From Penicillus capitatus (Eukaryota; Plantae; Chlorophyta): a stretch of DNA of 64,000 bases. Where the stretch lies: assembly GCA_965649825.1 (NCBI GenBank), contig OZ287697.1, positions 519,535 through 583,534 on the forward strand, written 5' to 3'. Of this stretch, positions 8,682 through 64,000 are shown piece by piece. The translations under genes and the position numbers were made by a program. The notes below the pieces were generated by a model. That model was not told the origin of the DNA. It saw only the letters and a list, made by a program, of their open reading frames with translations, and ran no database searches. The stretch's first letter is position 1, and every line of letters begins with the position of its first letter.

Positions 8682-9847
8682 CCCATAAGGCTACTATACA
8701 TTGTGTAGCTTCTCTTGTGCTCTACATTCCATGTTTGAGAAAAACACATGCTGATACTATCGTCCGTTCAAAAGTTACGTGTTTGAGGATGGTGCTGTGA
8801 TATGGCGAAGCGAGATTTATAATCGCGAGCGCTATTCTTCGATACTCTGTTCTTCGGAACATTTCTGCTGCTTGAAATCTCTGTGGTGGATCGGCAGATT
8901 GGTCTTCAGAAGATAAAATCGATATACAGTGATGATTCTATGGTGCAATGACGATGGTGAACCGATCGCGCGTGAAGTCGAAATCCGTTGGACCTGCATC
9001 TAATAACGCAATCTACGTGGATATGCGCTATGCCGGGCAAGTGAACTGGTGCAGCGAACAACGGAGCTATCTCCGGCCGTGCTTATCAAGTCGATCCTAT
9101 AATTAGGTCGAAGTTGGTGCAATCCCTGGCCATCGGAGAAATGGCAATAGCAACATCAACCTTGTGGCGCCGCCTTGAATTTTGAAAACGAGGATTCCGA
9201 TCACTTTTGCGAGAAAGAAGTAGCGGTGCACAGAAAAAAAAAACTTCGACGACCCGCCATCATGCGACTCGAGATATACTGTCCTTTACCTCACGTATAG
9301 TTGAAGCTGGTAACCAAAGGATTCACTTGAACACTTCATGAGCAGGACGGGCGCTCTTAGAAATACAGATCGCTATACGAGCGCGTACACTAGCTCAAAT
9401 GTAGTCGAGAACGACTTGGGAACAAAGCAAGACGTAAGGTGGATTCAATAAAAGATTCAACATACCAACTTTGAGATTTCTCAACTTACGTCGCGTTTTT
9501 ACTCAGTTTTCGTCGGCTTAAGGGGTCAAAGGTGAAAAGGACAAAAGTTTTTGTCCGGGTGGTGATGACCCTATCGTCGGCCCCCGAACTCAGCGCGACG
9601 TTGTCCTTTCCCCGCCGTAACCCATCCAACTCGGCGCGGGCTCGCCAGACTCAACCGGGTCAACTCTGATGGGACACCCTCCTCTGAGTCCGGCGCAGGA
9701 ATCGAACCCCCGCGGTCGTACTTCTCGAACTGGTCCAACTGCACCATCCGCATTCGGGTCGATCCCCACAGTCGAGAAGACGCCGTCGCCAACTTATGCG
9801 CACCCCTGACGACTCTCCCGAGCACTTCCTGACGACTTTGCGGCCGT

Positions 9848-9979
9848 TGTCGTGTTCGTTGACGGACAACGGGTTGACGACGAAGGCGTATAGCTTACAA
9901 AGACTATTTGTACAATGATTGTAAGAATTTATATAATCCTTTGGACAGCTGCACGAAGGTGGACAGCTGTCCACTGACA
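9848..9979 (-). repeat. TRIM 3' LTR (132 bp)
   Basis: Identical to 10529-10660. TGTC...GACA termini. On the minus strand it carries TATATAA and a TGTAA motif. Confidence 0.95.
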
Positions 9980-10292
9980 TGTGCCCACCCCCTTTCCGTT
10001 GTGCAGACTCCGAATAATGCGAACGGAACACATTTCACGATAGTCGGGATGTCATCAGGCTGGCCAGGAGTCGAACCAGGGCCATCGTCACGTGGCTTCT
10101 CCCTCTGCGGCCCATTCGCCGCAGCTTTGTAGCTCTTACGTCTCTGAGACTTCAGCGCCGACTCTGGAAATTCGAACCGTACTTCACAGCGACAACACGT
10201 CCGTGGTGACCCAAATAGAAAACGTAAACACGGACAAAGTAACAACGAACGTAAACACAACAATGCGCAACAGCACGCTTATCGCAGCGTGA

Positions 10293-10411
10293 AACTGAAA
10301 CGCAGCAACTCGGACGGTGGAACTGAAACACAACAACTCGGACGGTGGAACTGAAACTTAGCAGCTCGGACGGTGGAAGGTGGAACTGAAACACAGCAGC
10401 TCGGACGATGG
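10293..10411. repeat. 28-bp tandem repeat x4 inside the TRIM
   Basis: Unit AACTGAAACRCARCARCTCGGACGGTGG at 10293, 10321, 10349 and 10384. Confidence 0.9.
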
Positions 10412-10528
10412 AACGAACTACAGACTGCAGGTGGTAGGTAAAACGCTGTCACAACGGTCGTGTCTTGGAAAGTCTTCAGTCTTCGATGACGGGATTCTAT
10501 CGCCGGAATCTTTGTCGCTCCGAAACCA

Positions 10529-10660
10529 TGTCGTGTTCGTTGACGGACAACGGGTTGACGACGAAGGCGTATAGCTTACAAAGACTATTTGTACAATGAT
10601 TGTAAGAATTTATATAATCCTTTGGACAGCTGCACGAAGGTGGACAGCTGTCCACTGACA
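10529..10660 (-). repeat. TRIM 5' LTR (132 bp)
   Basis: Identical to 9848-9979. Directly followed by the PBS on the minus strand. Confidence 0.95.
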
Positions 10661-11285
10661 CCGTCCACCGTGTGCCCGTGACGACTTCACCGACGACTCC
10701 CTGACGACTTTGTCCACCGGTCTACTGTGTGCCCGTGACGACTCTCCCGACCACTTCGCCGACGACTTTGTCGGCCGCCCACCGCGCGCCCGTGACGACT
10801 TCGCCGACGACTACTTTACGACCTTTGTGACAACACGAAAGGCGTAGAGATTGTGAGGAAAGCTATAATGAGACCCTTCTCATTGTTACTCTGCATTGGT
10901 ATTTTTTACAATTAGCATTCTTGTCATTTCTATGTCGATCTATGTGTGTGCATGATGCTCTGGATGCAAAAGAAAATCATCCACTGTAAGTGAAGAGCAG
11001 CGATGTCCATGACTCATTCTTTCTTCGCTTAACCTGCGAAGTTCCTTCTTGCGGAAGAGGGGTCATGCGAAGGAGGTTCAAACCAAGTACGATTTCCGTC
11101 TACGATCGATAGATCAAAAAAAGTCCTCGAGATAAACTCATTTGATCAAGATTTTCCCGGAAAACCATTAACCGCTACTTCTAACGATGTATCTATGCTC
11201 ACATCCGACGACGTCTTAGGCACGTTAAAGAGATAGATCTCTGCGAAAAAGATTCGACATCGCAAAAATCATTTTCTTGCACTGT

Positions 11286-12167
11286 TCACAGTTCCACCAT
11301 TTTGCTGCGATTCTTATCGACCGCAGCTTTGCGGCCAGCGTCATCTTCCACCATTTCCTGCTCATTACATTGTCTCTTCGGATGTACAACTGACAGACAA
11401 TGATAGGTACCTTCCTCATAGCGCCTTCAGGAACATCGATGCCTTTCCGCGTTGCCTCTCTTGCGTAGATGCGTTTCATCCAGTCCTGCGCATTGACAGA
11501 TGGCCACGTCAATGACAATCTCCTCTCACAACGGTCACTTTGATTGAGGGAAACTCGTCGACGTCGATGGCAGCGTGATCGGCATACAGCACCCAGCAGA
11601 AATTGGCGATATCTGCTAGAGTAAATTGATCTCCTGCCAAATACTCGTGATCTTTCAAGCGGCTCTCCAGTACGCCCAAGAGACGTTTGCTCTCATCGTG
11701 AAAGCGCTTCTGTCCGTATGGCACCGGTTCGGGTGCTGCGTGTATGAAGTGGTTTGTTTGTCCCATCATGGGACCCACTCCTCCCATCTGAAACATCAGC
11801 CACTGGATCACTTCGTATCGCGCATTTCCCTCTTTGGGCAGTAGAGATCCGTCACCGTAGCGTTCTGCCAAATACATCATAATGGCACCGCTTTCGAAGA
11901 CAGACAGATTTCCATTGCTATGGTCCACTGCGGCAACATGGTTTGGAAGGAAGTAGACACGAACCGACTCGCACCTATGGCAGGAATGCGGCCGTTGGGG
12001 TTGATTTTGAGAAACCAGTCCTGCTTCTGCTCCTTCTCGCCGAGTTTCATATTGTACACGTCGTACTTGATCCCGAGTTCTTCAAGAGTGACGGAGGCTT
12101 TAAAACCATTCGGCCTGGGTGCGCTGTAGAGAGTGATAGGCGCCGCATGTGCTGTAGGCAAGATCAT
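11286..12167 (-). CDS. Glutathione S-transferase, YfcG/Ure2p (nu-class)-like
   Basis: ITLYSAPRPNGFKASVTLEELG, INPNGRIPAI, FESGAIMMYLAERY, QWLMFQMGGVGPMMGQ, YLAGDQFTLADIA. Three short introns. Confidence 0.9.
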
Positions 12168-12725
12168 CAGTTTTACGGTGTTGGCAATCGGTCGTGGCAA
12201 GAGGCTATGAGACTTGATGCGACGCCTTAAACGAGAACGAGAATGACTAGCTCTAAGGAACTCACCTCGACATACCGACGCGTTTCTCAAAAAAAAAAAA
12301 AACGCATCGTAGGTTGAGAATCGTACGGAGCTGAGGGAATAACCTGCAGCACGTGCAGCGGAAAGTCTCTGCATCGAATTGGATTGGATGTGCATTGGTT
12401 AAACATGTGCGCCGTGTTCAATCGTTCAAATCGTTTTCTTATCGTTAGAACGTCACCATCTGCTCAAGAAGACTAAGTCCTGCGCTCAAATCATGTTAAG
12501 TGAATCGCCAATGCTTCAAAAAAATCGAAGCATTTTTGGCTTCGATCATCGTTTGTATACGGACCAGAGGGAATTCCACTCGGCTGAGATGTGTTTGTTT
12601 TAGTGCCAGAACTGAAGAATACACGCAATCGTCCATCGAAACGGAGCCGTCAGTTGGGATTGCGGATTTAGGGCGTGAAATGTGCGAAATGCGAGCCCCG
12701 TATGTTTGTACAGGTAGTAAGAGGA

Positions 12726-14470: not shown

Positions 14471-14922
14471 TTGGTTTCCAAAGGTCGATTTTTTTTTTCT
14501 AGTCTCCGCTGTAGATCAAAGATGATTTATTCTTTAAAGTATTCTTTGCTTGTATGTTCTTGTTTCTGCTTCACACAGTGAGCAAATCGGATTGGATACG
14601 GTGTGGCGCAGCCGAGGCCGCGAAGGCCCTGGCATGTAGACCACGACTTTAAGCTCTTCGGCAAAGGCGTGACAATCCGAGTGTTTTCCAATCAATACTC
14701 CGAAAAGGAGACAGCAGCGAAGAGAAAAAGTAAGAATGTAGAATAGGAGCCAATGCAAATGACTAGTGTCTTATTTACAAGAAATTTGTAAACACAAAAC
14801 AGAGTCCGACTGTTTTGGCTAGTTCTGCTTATCGCATCGCGTAACGTCGGACAAGTTCGGACGGAAACGAAAGCAGTTTTTACAGCCCTGTTTTTAGAAT
14901 GCAAAAAGAATGAAAGGGAAAG

Positions 14923-15340
14923 AGGACAAAAGTTTTTGTCCGGGTGGTGATGACCCTATCGTCGGCCCCCGAACTCAGCGCGACGTTGTCCTTTCCCCGC
15001 CGTAACCCATCCAACTCGGCGCGGGCTCGCCAGACTCAACCGGGTCAACTCTGATGGGACACCCTCCTCTGAGTCCGGCGCAGGAATCGAACCCCCGCGG
15101 TCGTACTTCTCGAACTGGTCCAACTGCACCATCCGCATTCGGGTCGATCCCCACAGTCGAGAAGACGCCGTCACCAACTTATGCGCACCCCTGACGACTC
15201 TCCCGAGCACTTCCTGACGACTTTGCGGCCGTCCACCGTGTGCCCGTGACGACTTCACCGACGACTACCTGAAGACTCTCCCGACCACTTCCTGACGACT
15301 TTGTCCACAGGTCCACCGTGTGCCCATGACGACTTCTGAT
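14923..15340 (-). mobile_element. Dispersed Pol III-type (SINE-like) element, copy 2, uninterrupted
   Basis: Direct repeat of 9538-9847 (offset 5385 bp) that continues without the TRIM into the CCACCGTGTGCCCGTGACGAC tandem repeats. Confidence 0.7.
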
Positions 15341-47160: not shown

Positions 47161-49605
47161 ATGCGAGCAGTTGCCAAGAAACCAAGCACGATACACCATG
47201 GGCACGACAAGAGTGCGATGTTGACCAGATTAATGCAAAACGCCTGTTCAGAAAGATTACAAAACGACGCTGATGTGCGTGAGGTACTAGACACACTCAA
47301 AAGTTTGTGCGGCTGCCATACCTTATCCACCACAAAAAGATCGTTTCCAAAAAGACATGTCGATCCAGTCATCGAAAGTAAAAATACAGATCGCTTCGGA
47401 CGGACGCCACTTCACCGTGCAGCAAGAGATAGAAAGATGAAAGATGTGAAGGTAAATGGCCTTCCCTTGGTCTGCTCTCTGGCAATCTCGGCAGTATTTC
47501 CGCAGAGACAGATCAGACAAGGGGCAGACATCAATGCTCGAGACAAAGATGGATGGACGCCACTTCATATGGCCGCAGCTGGAGGGCACACCGGAATCGT
47601 CAAGGTCCACTCCTGTTCATCATGGCTCTTCTCACTTTCCGAAACACATGCCTAGCTTCTCTTGGCTCACAGGGCTCGTGTCAACGTTGCCGATGACAAC
47701 GGATCGTCGCCGCTTCACGAGGCAGCGCGTCATGGACATACCGACGTCGCAAAGGCGAATCCTGCATCATCGCCTGTCTTCGTTATCGAGTCACAGACGC
47801 CCGCAGGTTCTTCTGCGTTACGGCGCTCGGGTCAACGTCAAGACCGAAGAGAGATGGACGCCACTCCACTTGGCAGTGAGTACGGGAAACGTCGAGATTA
47901 TCAAAGTACACACCGTCTGTATCCATTCCTGTCCAAGCAACGAAGTTAACAGAGACTTCTGCGTCACAATGCCTCGGTCAACGTCGAGACAGACGATAAA
48001 TGGACGCCACTCCACGAAGCTGCGCGTTCTGGAAATACTGAGATCGTCAACGTAACATCTCCGAGGTGACTGGCCTTCTGTGTTAGGGAAATGCAATGTT
48101 AGATTCTTATGGATCACGGCGCCCGTGTCAATGTCTTCGATGAAGACGCATGGGCGCCCCTTCATCTTTCGGCACGTGATGGATATCCCGATATCGTGAC
48201 AGTAAATGCCACATCTACGATGGGTCGCCTTTCCGAGACAGACAATCGTAGGCTCTTTTGGATCACGGCGCTCTGATCGATGTCCTGACGGATGACAAAC
48301 GCACGCCGCTTCATCTTTCGGCGCGTAATGGATACACCACGATTGCGATGGTGCATTGTATGTATGCGTTTTCTCTTTTCGACTGTTTTTGCAGGCTCTT
48401 GTCGATCGCAACGCTTCGATCAACATCTTTGACGAAGACAGATTGACGCCACTTCATGAATCGGTGCATGCCGGGGACGCCGAACTCACTCAGGTGGAGT
48501 CCTTGTGCATGCTCATTCACTCCACTGACCCACCTATGCAGGTCCTCCTGGATCACGGCGCGCTGCCTGACGTGTTTGATATCACTGCTACGGCCCCGCT
48601 ACATGTGGCAACGCTTTTTGGACGCGAAGACATCGCGAAAGTAAACGGACATCTGCGACACCGCCTCGCGCGTAGAGGACGCGTCTTTGCAGATTCTTTT
48701 GGAAAGCGGCGCGTCCGTCAATGTCGCCGATGTGCATGGATGGACGCCACTCTATCTGTCGGCACTCGTCGGCAGCCATTCTGTCGCCGAGGTGAACGCC
48801 AGATTCCGAGCTAACCGAATCCGATCGTCATCCTCAGGCTTTGTTGGATGGCGGTGCATCAGTCGACGTGCAGAATGATGATGGACGGACGCCGCTTCAC
48901 GAAGCAGCGCGATTAGGGAGCACTGAGATCGTCGAGGTGCATTCCTGCTGGAATCCATCCCCCCTGCACAGAGAAATTTGCAGGGGCTCTTGAATCGCAG
49001 TGCAGAGGTGAATATTGTTGACAAAGACGGATTGGCGCCGTTACACGGAGCAGCGTGTTATGGGCGGGCCAAGATTACAAAGGTGCGTTGTGTATTCACG
49101 ACAACGACGGACTCCCCCTTTGCCGACTGGACCATTCCTAGGCTCTTTTGCGCCGCCACGCGTGGGTCAATGTTCAATCGGAGAATGGAACGACGCCACT
49201 GCATCTCTCAGCGCGCCACGGCCGCGACTGGATCGTAAAGGTGCGTTGTGTGTCTGCGTCGTCGATTGGACACGAGACTGGCATTCATAGATGCTCCTGC
49301 GTCGGGGAGCTCGGATCAACGTCGCTTTAGAGGACGGATGGACGCCGCTTCATCTTGCGTCGTACGGTGGACATCTCCACGTCGCAAGGGTGTGTGTCGT
49401 GCGTCACAAGCAAGGAGTGATTGATGACTGGTTCTTGTAGATCCTTGTTGCTGCCGGAGCGAACACGACGAGCAAAGAAGATGATGGAAAGATCTCTTTG
49501 GATGTGGTTTGCACCGCAACTGACGCCACGTGTTCAGACGAAGAGCGAGAAGCGCTCATTAGACTACTGACGCCTCGACGCAGAAACTTCCGCATTAGTC
49601 TTTAG
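47161..49605 (+). CDS. Ankyrin repeat protein, 15 exons, 13 internal exons of exactly 99 bp
   Basis: Repeated (L)L..GA.VN..D..G.TPLH.AA..G...IVK units, each bounded by phase-0 introns of ~44-59 nt. Start codon uncertain. Confidence 0.85.
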
Positions 49606-61590: not shown

Positions 61591-64000
61591 ATGATACGCT
61601 TTCACCTTCTACCTATTACCGTGCTTTGGCTGACAGTTTTCGCAGCCGCTCAAGAATTCCATAGCTACGGCAACAGCACAGGCTTGTTCGTCGGAGAACT
61701 TCATAACGCTGAAACAAATGGGACTCCTCCGCAACACACGGTAGAAAAGCAGGCTCACCAGCCCAAGCAGAGTGCCTCGGCGAGCAGCGCATCCGACGTT
61801 GCAAAACCTAAAAGCCAATTTTCCTCTGGACGACGGGCGCAGTTACCAGAACAGAGTGCCTCGGCGAGCAGCGCATCCTACGTTACAAGACCTCCTAGGC
61901 AGTTTTCTCCAGGACGACGGGTGCAGTTACCAGAACAGAGTGCCTCGGGGAGCAGCGCGTCGTACTTTGCAGGACCTCCTAGGCAGTCGCAATCACAAGG
62001 TTCGCATGTCGTACGTTGTGCAGACGTCAGTTGTGTTTGCAGGATCGGATTGCAAGAGTTCTCCGGATGCCGGGCCTTGCGGTCTTATTGAGAAAAGATG
62101 GTTCTACAATACGAACACGGCGCAGTGCGAGGAGTTCAGCTACGGCGGCTGTAACGGGAACAGAAACAACTACAAAACGTACAAGACTTGCCAGGACATT
62201 TGTCTGAATGGTCGGCCGTGTGTTGCTTATCTAAGCAACTTTGCATAACTATGTGTACACAGGTTGCAAAGGGGATAGATGTGGGGCATCGTCGGGTAAA
62301 ACGATTGACAGCAGACTGCAAAGAGAATCATCAGTGCCGTCGGAAACTATCGTTCCCGGAGAGACAGCGCTATCATCAGGAGCGACGACAGACGTCGCGG
62401 TTGGCACCCCGACGAAAGGCTTCCCATCATTAAAACTCGGGACGGCAGTGATACCTAAATCGCCAAAAGCAGCAGATTTTTCATTTCCATCGGACATTAA
62501 GCCAGTAACAGCGCCGTCGACGGGAGAAAGTTTGAAGCCATCCGCGCCACAAGCGATATTTGAAACCGTCCGAAAGCCGAGCCTCTCAATCCCGTCCGCA
62601 GTGCCCTCACCGCCGATCTTTCCAGTACCGTCGACTCCAGCAAAGCCGTCCGCAGTGCCCTCACCGCCGATCTTTCCAGTACCGTCGACTCCAGCAAAGC
62701 CGTCGACAGTGCCCTCGCCGCCGATCTTTCCAGTGCCGTCGACTCCAGCAAAGCCGTCCACAGTGCCCTCGCCGCCGATCTTTCCAGTGCCGTCGACTCC
62801 AGCAAAGCCGTCCGCAGTGCCCTCACCGCCGATCTTTCCAGTGCCGTCGACTCCAGCAAAGCCGTCCGCAGTGCCCTCACCGCCGATCTTTCCAGTGCCG
62901 TCCGTAGTGCCCCCGTTGCCTAGCCTCTCAATCCCATCTACTCCAGCTGAGCCCAGCGAAACGGCGTCCGACTCGGCGCCCGCAGAGCCCAGTGCCGAAT
63001 CTTCAGCGTCGGCGCCAGCTGAGCCCAGTGCCGAATCTTCAGCGTCGGCGCCAGCAGAGCCCAGTGCAACGGCGTCCGACTCGGCACCCGCAGAGCCAAG
63101 TGCCGAATCTTCGGCGTCGGCGCCAGCAGAGCCCAGTGCAACGGCGTCCGACTCGGCACCCGCAGAGCCAAGTGCCGAATCTTCAGCGTCGGCGCCAGCT
63201 GAGCCCAGTGCTGAGTCTTCGGCGTCGGCGCCGGCAGAGCCCAGTGCAACGGCGTCCGACTCGGCACCCGCAGAGCCAAGTGCCGAGTCTTCGGCGTCGG
63301 CGCCCGCAGAGCCCAGTGCCGAATCTTCAGCGTCGGCGCCAGCTGAGCCCAGTGCTGAGTCTTCGGCGTCGGCGCCGGCAGAGCCCAGTGCAACGGCGTC
63401 CGACTCGGCACCCGCAGAGCCAAGTGCCGAGTCTTCGGCGTCGGCGCCCGCAGAGCCCAGTGCCGAGTCTTCGGCGTCGGCGCCCGCAGAGCCCAGTGTC
63501 GAATCTTCAGCGTCGGCGCCAGCAGAGCCCAGTGCAACGGCGTCCGACTCGGCACCCGCAGAGCCAAGTGCCGAGTCTTCGGCGTCGGCGCCCGCAGAGC
63601 CCAGTGCCGAGTCTTCGGCGTCGGCGCCCGCAGAGCCCAGTGCCGAATCTTCAGCGTCGGCGCCAGCTGAGCCCAGTGCTGAGTCTTCGGCGTCGGCGCC
63701 GGCAGAGCCCAGTGCAACGGCGTCCGACTCGGCACCCGCAGAGCCAAGTGCCGAATCTTCGGCGTCGGCGCCAGCAGAGCCCAGTGCAACGGCGTCCGAC
63801 TCGGCACCCGCAGAGCCAAGTGCCGAATCTTCAGCGTCGGCGCCAGCTGAGCCCAGTGCTGAGTCTTCGGCGTCGGCGCCGGCAGAGCCCAGTGCAACGG
63901 CGTCCGACTCGGCACCCGCAGAGCCAAGTGCCGAGTCTTCGGCGTCGGCGCCCGCAGAGCCCAGTGCCGAATCTTCAGCGTCGGCGCCAGCTGAGCCCAG
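61591..64000 (+). CDS. Secreted Kunitz/BPTI-domain protein with a Pro/Ser/Ala/Glu-rich repeat stalk; partial at the right edge
   Basis: Signal peptide MIRFHLLPITVLWLTVFAAA. Exon 2 reads DCKSSPDAGPCGLIEKRWFYNTNTAQCEEFSYGGCNGNRNNYKTYKTCQDIC (6 Cys). Exon 3 stays open to the window end. Confidence 0.85.
62592..62903 (+). repeat. 54-bp coding tandem repeat x~5.8 (PSAVPSPPIFPVPSTPAK)
   Basis: Read directly from the sequence. Synonymous and A/T variants between units. Confidence 0.92.
62943..64000 (+). repeat. 36-bp coding tandem repeat x29+ (PAEPSAESSASA / PAEPSATASDSA)
   Basis: Exact 36-bp periodicity from 62943 to the window end. Two unit types are interspersed. Confidence 0.95.

Follow-up and report, generated by a model that had tools for sequence, protein, structure and literature searches.

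The window analysed here, a 64,000-nt stretch of the Penicillus capitatus contig OZ287697.1 (positions 519,535 to 583,534 of the forward strand), carries on its minus strand two copies of a short element with promoter motifs of the RNA polymerase III (Pol III) type. Copy 1 (9847 to 9538) and copy 2 (15232 to 14923) show a single difference (9788, G vs. A), and a self-BLAST of the window aligned 9528–9847 with 14913–15232 at 99.07% identity across 321 bp. Host genes lie between the copies: GST on the minus strand and a member of the photolyase family on the plus strand. The original prediction had reported two near-identical 310-bp copies, which were found as described, one base apart. It had further interpreted them as a young family of short interspersed elements (SINEs) with a tRNA head and a 5S-like body. 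We arrive at a different reading, in which the element may belong to an old family of Pol III-type noncoding RNA (ncRNA) genes.

Anatomy of the two window copies

In copy 1, the conserved 240-nt core runs from TTCTCGACTGTGGGG to CTTTTGTCC (9539–9778, minus strand, as are all parts of both copies). This putative transcribed region was delimited in two alignments of 11 full copies (A1 and A2), and the nhmmer match covered 9507–9816. The core contains an A-box-like motif, TGGTGCAGTTGG (9735–9746, read directly; A-box consensus TRGYNNARNNGG), and a B box, GGTTCGATTCC (9698–9708), which matches the consensus GGTTCGANTCC exactly. The two boxes have a tRNA-like spacing of 38 nt, start to start. The B-box consensus occurs three times in the 64-kb window, as compared with 0.16 expected occurrences; the third lies inside an unrelated nested retrotransposon. 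A 10-bp helix, CGCCGGACTC / GAGTCTGGCG, is formed by arms at 9695–9686 and 9652–9643 and spans 9643–9695 together with the enclosed 33 nt. The conserved block closes with the palindrome GGACAAAA-AC-TTTTGTCC; in copy 1, the terminal palindrome GGACAAAAACTTTTGTCC (9539–9556) includes a T4 run at 9543–9546, which we propose as a Pol III terminator. The boxes, the helix and the palindrome had all been pointed out in the original prediction, as had the motifs CCCATCAGA, GTTGAG, GGATGGGTTAC and GGGAA, every one of which is present.

A TATA-like box, CATAAGTT (9791–9798), lies ~30 nt 5′ of the start of strong conservation in copy 1. It is preceded by a proximal upstream region with AGTCGTCA motifs (9799–9847), which reaches to the insertion point of the nested retrotransposon. 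Beyond the insertion follows a distal upstream region (10661–10828) built of 57-nt tandem repeats in which AGTCGTCA (plus-strand GACGACT) is frequent; here, Tandem Repeats Finder returned a period of 57 and 3.0 copies at 10659–10828. The GACGAC-rich repeats noticed earlier are real, and most of the copy 1 array lies beyond an 813-bp insertion that had gone unrecognised. The segment 10661–10828 resumes the homology with copy 2 (15229–15336), so that the unit repeated in the window measures at least 420–490 bp, not 310 bp. On the other side of the core, copy 1 has a weakly conserved downstream segment of the type CCTTTGAyyCTTTTnGnCGCCnAAAACnGAG (9490–9538; ~65–75%, 9/11 copies).

Copy 2 repeats this layout. 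Its core (14924–15163) has the A box at 15131–15120, the B box at 15093–15083 and the T4 run at 14928–14931. The upstream region (15164–15336) has its TATA-like box at 15183–15176, along with repeats that carry the AGTCGTCA motif. Its downstream extension is of the B type (14658–14923) and is homologous to the downstream flanks of two copies at other loci, L007a and L008, with 62–80% identity.

A dispersed family

The family comparison covered the window, with copies 1 and 2 denoted w1 and w2, and the loci L001–L010, amounting to ~270 kb read. A 100-aa spurious open reading frame (ORF) of copy 2, used as a query, returned 13 ORF clusters, all of them from ENA assemblies and on other large contigs. 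Eight loci were fetched from these clusters (L002–L008 and L010, all from the ENA assembly ERZ25074695). Each of the eight contained a copy, and L007 and L008 each contained a second one. The data read thus hold 12 copies on seven contigs, 11 of them full. Taking ORF calls, cluster membership and direct reading together, the family comprises ~24 loci on 13 contigs of ~7.1 Mb in all, from this one ENA metagenome assembly, in which the window lies on a contig of 1.46 Mb. The unit is a short interspersed, non-tandem repeat of ~400–650 bp, and its core is 85–94% identical between contigs. Public protein collections contain ~20 or more 'proteins' that are spurious ORFs across this repeat, with frames that shift between copies.

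The expectation that the element belongs to a wider family was thus confirmed. Within the 64-kb window, just two copies are seen, 5.4 kb apart, which by itself would suit a private local duplication or a chance coincidence of motifs. The ten further copies on six other contigs refute this explanation, the ORF clusters indicate yet more copies, and we regard its probability as negligible. The supposed youth of the family did not hold up either, given the 85–94% identity of the other copies, their collinear paralogous segments and spacers at ~55%. Judged by these comparisons, the family is old and dispersed, with at least ~20 loci.

Scans of JGI metagenomes gave no match to a 28-mer of the element. 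An invariant 20-mer gave 33 matches, none of them an element copy; nearly all lay on high-GC contigs (61–72%), which are presumably bacterial. No family copy was found in L009, a 21.5-kb orthologous stretch of a related organism (ERZ26696514). L009 and L002 are 88.7% identical at the nucleotide level and collinear over 9.5 kb, and their PPDK proteins are 97% identical. In an empty-site comparison of the two, synteny stopped ~300 nt before the L002 copy, and no clean empty or filled site was readable. The closest named sequences to the PPDK of L002 are chlorophyte (67%), with land plants at ~65%, a weak pointer to the green lineage.

Conserved features of the 11 full copies

Conservation across the 11 copies is strong in the 240-nt block that runs from TTCTCGACTGTGGGG to CTTTTGTC, where only 42 of 231 core columns vary. 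The A-box-like motif reads TGGTGCAGTTGG in nine copies and TGGTGCAGCTGG in the remaining two, the B box is intact in 9/11, and nine copies have both boxes intact. Homology extends 100–200 nt 5′ of the A box in all 11 copies, and the 20 nt directly before the putative start are near-invariant. An A/T-rich, TATA-like block occupies the same alignment columns in every copy, as CATAAGTT, CATACGAT, TATATGTT or GTATGTT. All copies also have two to seven AGTCGTC motifs within ~150 nt upstream, against a background of ~1 per 5 kb. This AGTCGTC stretch is made up of degenerate 57-nt repeats of the promoter-proximal segment, in numbers that differ between copies.

At the opposite end, a T4–5 run is located at the same column, or at most ~12 nt from it, in ten of the copies. 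The copy without it, L010, has likewise lost its B box and the palindrome's 3′ arm. In the paralogous L006, this 3′ arm is missing too, and the B box and a T5 run are kept. Promoter and terminator motifs are kept in most copies and decay together, and some copies are probably decaying pseudogenes. Downstream of the block, 45 weakly conserved nt are common to 9/11 copies, and w2, L007a and L008 share an additional ~200 nt. The plus-strand words CUGAUGG and GUGAUGA, which recall hammerhead or C/D-box motifs, are not conserved across the copies.

Core conservation and probable gene conversion

Copies w1 and L007a lie 617 and 574 nt, respectively, downstream of paralogous GST genes (with the nested insertion removed from w1). 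The GST genes (window 11225–12500, minus strand; L007 8300–9554) share ~80% nucleotide identity. The GST-linked copies go back to an old segmental duplication, which took the element with it. Between w1 and L007a, identity is ~80% in the GST coding sequence, ~55% in the spacer, which is near saturation, and 88–98% in the core. The paralogous segments of L006 and L010 gave a similar picture, with flanks at 78–90% and the core at 92–100%. Over the whole loci, L006 and L010 show a paralogy of 75–91% that includes trypsin and ankyrin genes and a family copy in the same place; the genome appears to be rich in old segmental duplicates. Copy w2 has a core ~95% identical to those of L005 and L007a, whereas its 300-nt upstream flank is 55–72% identical to that of L005 and its 250-nt downstream flank is 62–74% identical to that of L007a. 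Over the paralogous segments as a whole, the 240-nt core is 88–100% identical and the homologous spacers 55–85%.

Neighbouring copies are the most alike, and their similarity has sharp edges: w1 and w2, 5.4 kb apart, are 99% identical, and L007a and L007b, 9 kb apart, 97.5%. The core of copy 2 is of type 1 (GGACCAG, GCGCTGAG and the U:A variant of the helix). Its flanks are shared with L005, L007a and L008, the cores of which are of type 2. A type-1 core inside type-2-associated flanks would be expected if copy 1 had converted copy 2, and this discordance indicates local gene conversion. There are two upstream and two downstream flank types, and each of the four possible pairings was seen (w1, L007a, w2 and L005), which suggests exchanges within the core. 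The 99.7% identity of w1 and w2 is likewise best explained by local gene conversion. It would reflect local homogenisation in an old family, so that the inference of a young family drawn from it was wrong. The cores may be kept alike by purifying selection, by gene conversion or by both.

Relationship to tRNA and 5S rRNA

ARAGORN detected no tRNA in the 64-kb window, and no Rfam match was obtained across the 64 kb at gathering thresholds. With the limit relaxed to E ≤ 10, searches of 1.5 kb and of the 256-nt core returned no match to tRNA, 5S, signal recognition particle (SRP) RNA, RNase P or MRP. Weak matches to small nucleolar RNA (snoRNA) and riboswitch models (E 0.26–8.5) are due to chance. 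A true tRNA-Gln of L002, included as a positive control, scored 68 bits; its match to the element is confined to the 10-nt A box. An identity as tRNA, 5S, SRP, RNase P/MRP, 7SK or snoRNA was rejected for lack of any Rfam match, and a tRNA head joined to a 5S body, understood as homology, did not survive the null results of ARAGORN and of the Rfam tRNA and 5S models.

The 5S-like motifs fared unevenly. The words themselves are present, and the alignment behind them did not stand out: a local alignment to a plant 5S sequence, which is not a database record, matched 45 of 73 columns (62%), with a score reached by 213 of 1000 dinucleotide shuffles. SINEBase asks for at least 60% identity to tRNA, 5S rRNA or 7SL RNA over at least 60 nt (PMC3531059), a threshold that 62% over 73 columns nominally reaches, with a 5S query that is no database record and shuffles that do as well. 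A post-hoc statistic, an exact 10-mer plus a collinear exact 8-mer shared with this plant 5S, was reached by 5 of 20,000 shuffles. The GGAUGGGUUA word lies in the loop of a hairpin in the consensus fold, unlike in 5S, and the GGAUGGG word is predicted to fall in a hairpin loop instead of a helix IV-like stem. Given the shuffle results and the missing covariance-model signal, we hold the 5S ancestry of the body as a lead and not as a finding; a partial 5S ancestry is doubtful.

A retrotransposon nested in copy 1

The insertion in the upstream region of copy 1 (9848–10660, minus strand) is an 813-bp LTR retrotransposon resembling a terminal-repeat retrotransposon in miniature (TRIM) and is not a family member. 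Its two long terminal repeats (LTRs; 9848–9979 and 10529–10660) are identical, measure 132 bp each and have the ends TGTCAG...CGACA. A sequence like a primer binding site (PBS), TGGTTTCGGAGCGACA, follows directly after the 5′ LTR (10528 to 10513), and a polypurine tract (PPT), GGAAAGGGGGTGGG, precedes the 3′ LTR (9997 to 9984). The element is flanked by a 4-bp target-site duplication (TSD), ACGG, at 10664–10661 and 9847–9844, and copy 2 has kept the empty site, GGTGGACGGCCGCAAAG. The internal region contains 28/35-nt tandem repeats (10289–10413). The one B-box-like word of the TRIM, GGTTCGACTCC (10067–10077), is located in this internal region, not in the LTRs. No further copy was found in the 270 kb read. 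The TRIM splits copy 1 and is a recent insertion.

Another LTR retrotransposon, of the Ty3/gypsy type, occupies 4407–9364 of L008, with identical 205-bp LTRs and ORFs for RVT_1, rve and an aspartic protease. It lies ~550 nt away from a family copy. The identity of its LTRs indicates that LTR elements have been recently active in this genome.

Other features of the window and the loci

The end of the window (62533–64000) is a GC-rich (63%) tandem-repeat block, with a period of 54 nt at 62592–62902 (97% matches) and periods of 36/72/108/180 nt from 62973 to the window end. An open 329-aa minus-strand frame overlaps these repeats, and the block could be repetitive coding sequence or else a minisatellite. 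An 84-nt tandem repeat lies at 61768–61987 (2.6 copies, 86% matches). At 47810–48353, there are four 99-nt ankyrin-repeat-like segments with a spacing of 146–150 nt, which suggests one short (~48-nt) intron per repeat.

Trypsin, Kazal, MACPF, VWA and ankyrin genes are abundant at the loci, and an RME-8 fragment has no close named relative. A 4.5-kb block is shared by L003 (4451–8930) and L004 (3465–7938) with 90–94% identity, 1–2 kb upstream of the family copy. It has the opposite orientation relative to the family copy in the two loci and reflects an inversion or else a mobile or duplicated segment common to both.

Discussion

In our favoured reading, the element belongs to a multi-copy family that is specific to its lineage and made up of ~240-nt ncRNA genes of the Pol III type, some of them pseudogenes, and is not a retroposed SINE; we consider the chances that this is correct to be about even. 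An ncRNA gene family had been named as a fallback in the original prediction, and it is now the reading favoured by the evidence. At its upstream end, each gene would have degenerate 57-nt repeats, variable in number, with AGTCGTCA motifs; the CGTCA core of these motifs is complementary to TGACG. Next would come a TATA-like box, CATAAGTT or one of its variants, and the conserved block would open ~25–30 nt past it, near GTGGGG (~9769 in copy 1, ~15154 in copy 2). An A-box-like motif would lie ~20 nt inside the block, followed 38 nt further on by a perfect B box, and the block would terminate ~240 nt later at the T4 run within the palindrome. The promoter would thus be a hybrid, with CGTCA-motif repeats and a TATA-like box upstream and the type-2 A and B boxes internal. 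The copies would multiply by duplication at the DNA level, along with their flanks.

The predicted product is an RNA of ~235–240 nt ending at an oligo-U. It would consist of a 75-nt 5′ hairpin with a 14-bp base between the B-box sequence and GUGGGGAUCGACCC; a central domain that the covarying 10-bp helix closes; a hairpin with GGAUGGGUUA in its loop; and a GC-rich 3′ hairpin. RNAalifold predicted 67 pairs for the 11 copies and recovered the 10-bp helix as pairs 86–95 with 129–138. This helix, singled out at the start from the window alone, is the sole one with a compensatory change, from U:A (three copies) to A:U (eight copies) or the reverse, and it also shows two G·U to G:C changes in two copies. 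Six other changes across the fold are wobble-compatible. The folding energy of the antisense strand is unexceptional (z = −0.7).

Several points speak against a family of Pol III RNA genes. Transcription, the polymerase, the RNA ends and any function are deduced from sequence features, and a TATA box with TGACG-type motifs fits a Pol II promoter equally well. None of the 4227 Rfam models matches the element. Of the predicted pairs, 54 of 67 are invariant and seven cells break pairs, while the single compensatory change may be one event. The sense-strand fold is no more stable than shuffles (z = −1.1, with 21 of 200 shuffles as good). Variable columns make up 12% of the paired and 27% of the unpaired positions (Fisher p = 0.005), a contrast that is partly circular, as RNAalifold favours conserved columns. 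With few varying pairs, an unexceptional energy and a partly circular contrast, the structural support for a family RNA is modest. Gene conversion alone could conserve the core without any function, and a density of at least three copies per Mb, often in pairs within 5–10 kb and with decayed members, would also fit a repeat family. A stronger version of the RNA gene reading is put forward with reserve: that the family is an abundant, hitherto undescribed and functional class of ~240-nt Pol III RNAs from a little-sampled eukaryotic lineage, under purifying selection at many loci, in which a tRNA-type promoter was fused to a degenerate 5S-derived module, so that it would be a domesticated chimera and not a selfish SINE. 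We think it rather less likely to be true than false.

Among the alternatives, a SINE that joins a tRNA head to a 5S-like body would rely on its internal promoter for transcription by Pol III and would be spread to new sites by the reverse transcriptase of a long interspersed element (LINE) or a Penelope-like element (PLE). The conserved A and B boxes, a SINE-typical length, an interspersed occurrence at ~20 or more loci with some decayed copies, the rarity of the collinear 5S-like words in the post-hoc test and the nominal SINEBase identity all suit such an element. The upstream region speaks against it: a retrocopy of a Pol III transcript would lack the upstream promoter, yet all 11 copies carry this region, with its TATA-like box and CGTCA repeats, so that the putative head is not 5′-terminal, and near-invariant bases stand directly in front of the presumed start. 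Neither an A-rich or simple-repeat tail nor a TSD at a consistent pair of ends was seen; as to the TSD, the original prediction, which had found no TSD, was upheld by a systematic search over the family copies, whereas its choice of the SINE class was not. The copies are moreover collinear in old paralogous segments, with the core far above the spacer or the neighbouring coding sequence. The lack of tRNA or 5S covariance-model signal, a 5S alignment no better than shuffles and a match to the true tRNA-Gln that amounts to the A box also speak against it, and we consider a SINE unlikely. Helitron-type elements, marked by a 5′ TC, a 3′ CTRR and a hairpin ~10 nt ahead of the 3′ end, were rejected as well: the bases after the terminal palindrome differ between copies, there is no CTRR, and Helitron ends are absent.

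The upstream tandem repeats and the TATA-like box of every copy are LTR-like, and the unit of ~400–650 bp would suit solo LTRs of an LTR retrotransposon that is non-autonomous and bears a Pol III promoter (TRIMp3 of the Cassandra, Helenus or Ajax type), whose U3 would be the repeat-rich upstream part. The host has recently active LTR elements (the nested TRIM and the gypsy element of L008), and TRIMs with small-RNA-derived LTR sequences have been described (PMC10886601). We nevertheless find this explanation quite unlikely, since none of the 12 copies has a close partner in direct orientation with a PBS and PPT between the two, TG..CA ends with a TSD of 4–6 bp turned up in a systematic search only as scattered chance matches, and the homology edges are gradual and pair-specific. 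Decay would be expected to be uniform, yet the core stands far above the homologous flanks. The window copies themselves, taken as the two LTRs of one retrotransposon, would enclose the host GST and photolyase genes; no gag or pol protein was found in the 4 kb between them, and this candidate was rejected. The flank mosaicism, which points to exchange within the core, the homogenisation of neighbouring copies and a fold that is not unusually stable would also agree with an element acting as DNA, without a stable RNA (an extra-TFIIIC site, an insulator or a recombination hotspot), and kept uniform by ectopic gene conversion. Against this stand the compensatory and G·U-compatible changes, which are strand-specific signals of the RNA type, as well as the TATA-like box, the fixed A/B spacing and the T run at the end of conservation, which together resemble a complete transcription unit. 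We regard such a DNA-level element as improbable.

If transcribed, the family would represent small RNAs that are new, highly repeated and without any relative in Rfam. Should the 5S-like words reflect real ancestry, it would be a non-mobile counterpart to the re-use of 5S promoter modules by Cassandra, Ajax and SINE3. The family clearly exemplifies conservation confined to the core, along with gene conversion, at dispersed non-coding loci, and it shows how A and B boxes, combined with near-identical neighbours, can be misread as a young SINE. For annotation, it accounts for at least ~20 spurious ORFs called across its elements in public protein collections.

Comparison with known systems

The hallmarks of SINEs are a 5′ head derived from a small RNA, a 3′ tail and flanking TSDs. 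SINEBase defines a SINE as a short (<1 kb) interspersed repeat, for which A and B boxes are only indicative (PMC3531059). Like SINE2 and SINE3 elements (PMC3531059), the present family is a short interspersed repeat with Pol III boxes, decayed copies and collinear 5S-like words. Unlike them, it has a head that is not 5′-terminal, an upstream promoter in every copy, neither tail nor TSD, no covariance-model likeness to tRNA or 5S, and a core conserved well above its homologous flanks. Among the TRIMp3 elements, Cassandra has a 5S sequence in the LTR, Helenus a tRNA-like sequence and Ajax a partial 5S, and in all of them two small-RNA-like LTRs flank a PBS and PPT, with a TSD of 4–5 bp (Kojima 2024, PMC10886601). 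The family resembles TRIMp3 in having a small-RNA-promoter-like sequence inside a repeat of a few hundred bp with its own upstream region, in a host with active TRIMs. It differs in that its 12 copies show no paired LTRs, PBS, PPT or TSD. The TRIM nested in copy 1 is a canonical TRIM unrelated to the family.

Hybrid Pol III promoters, which combine internal A and B boxes with upstream elements, are known from the genes for vault RNA, 7SL RNA, EBER and tRNA-Sec. The family shares with these genes an A-box-like motif, a perfect B box within a non-tRNA helix, a TATA-like box ~30 nt before the block, upstream CGTCA/TGACG-type motifs and a T run at the end. It differs in its length of ~240 nt and in having at least ~20 dispersed copies, and it matches none of them in sequence or structure. 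The gene families for tRNA, 5S rRNA and small nuclear RNA (snRNA) are dispersed and evolve in concert. The present family is unrelated to these in sequence by covariance-model search and is like them in its many dispersed, locally paired copies, its homogenised cores with diverging flanks, and its pseudogenes.

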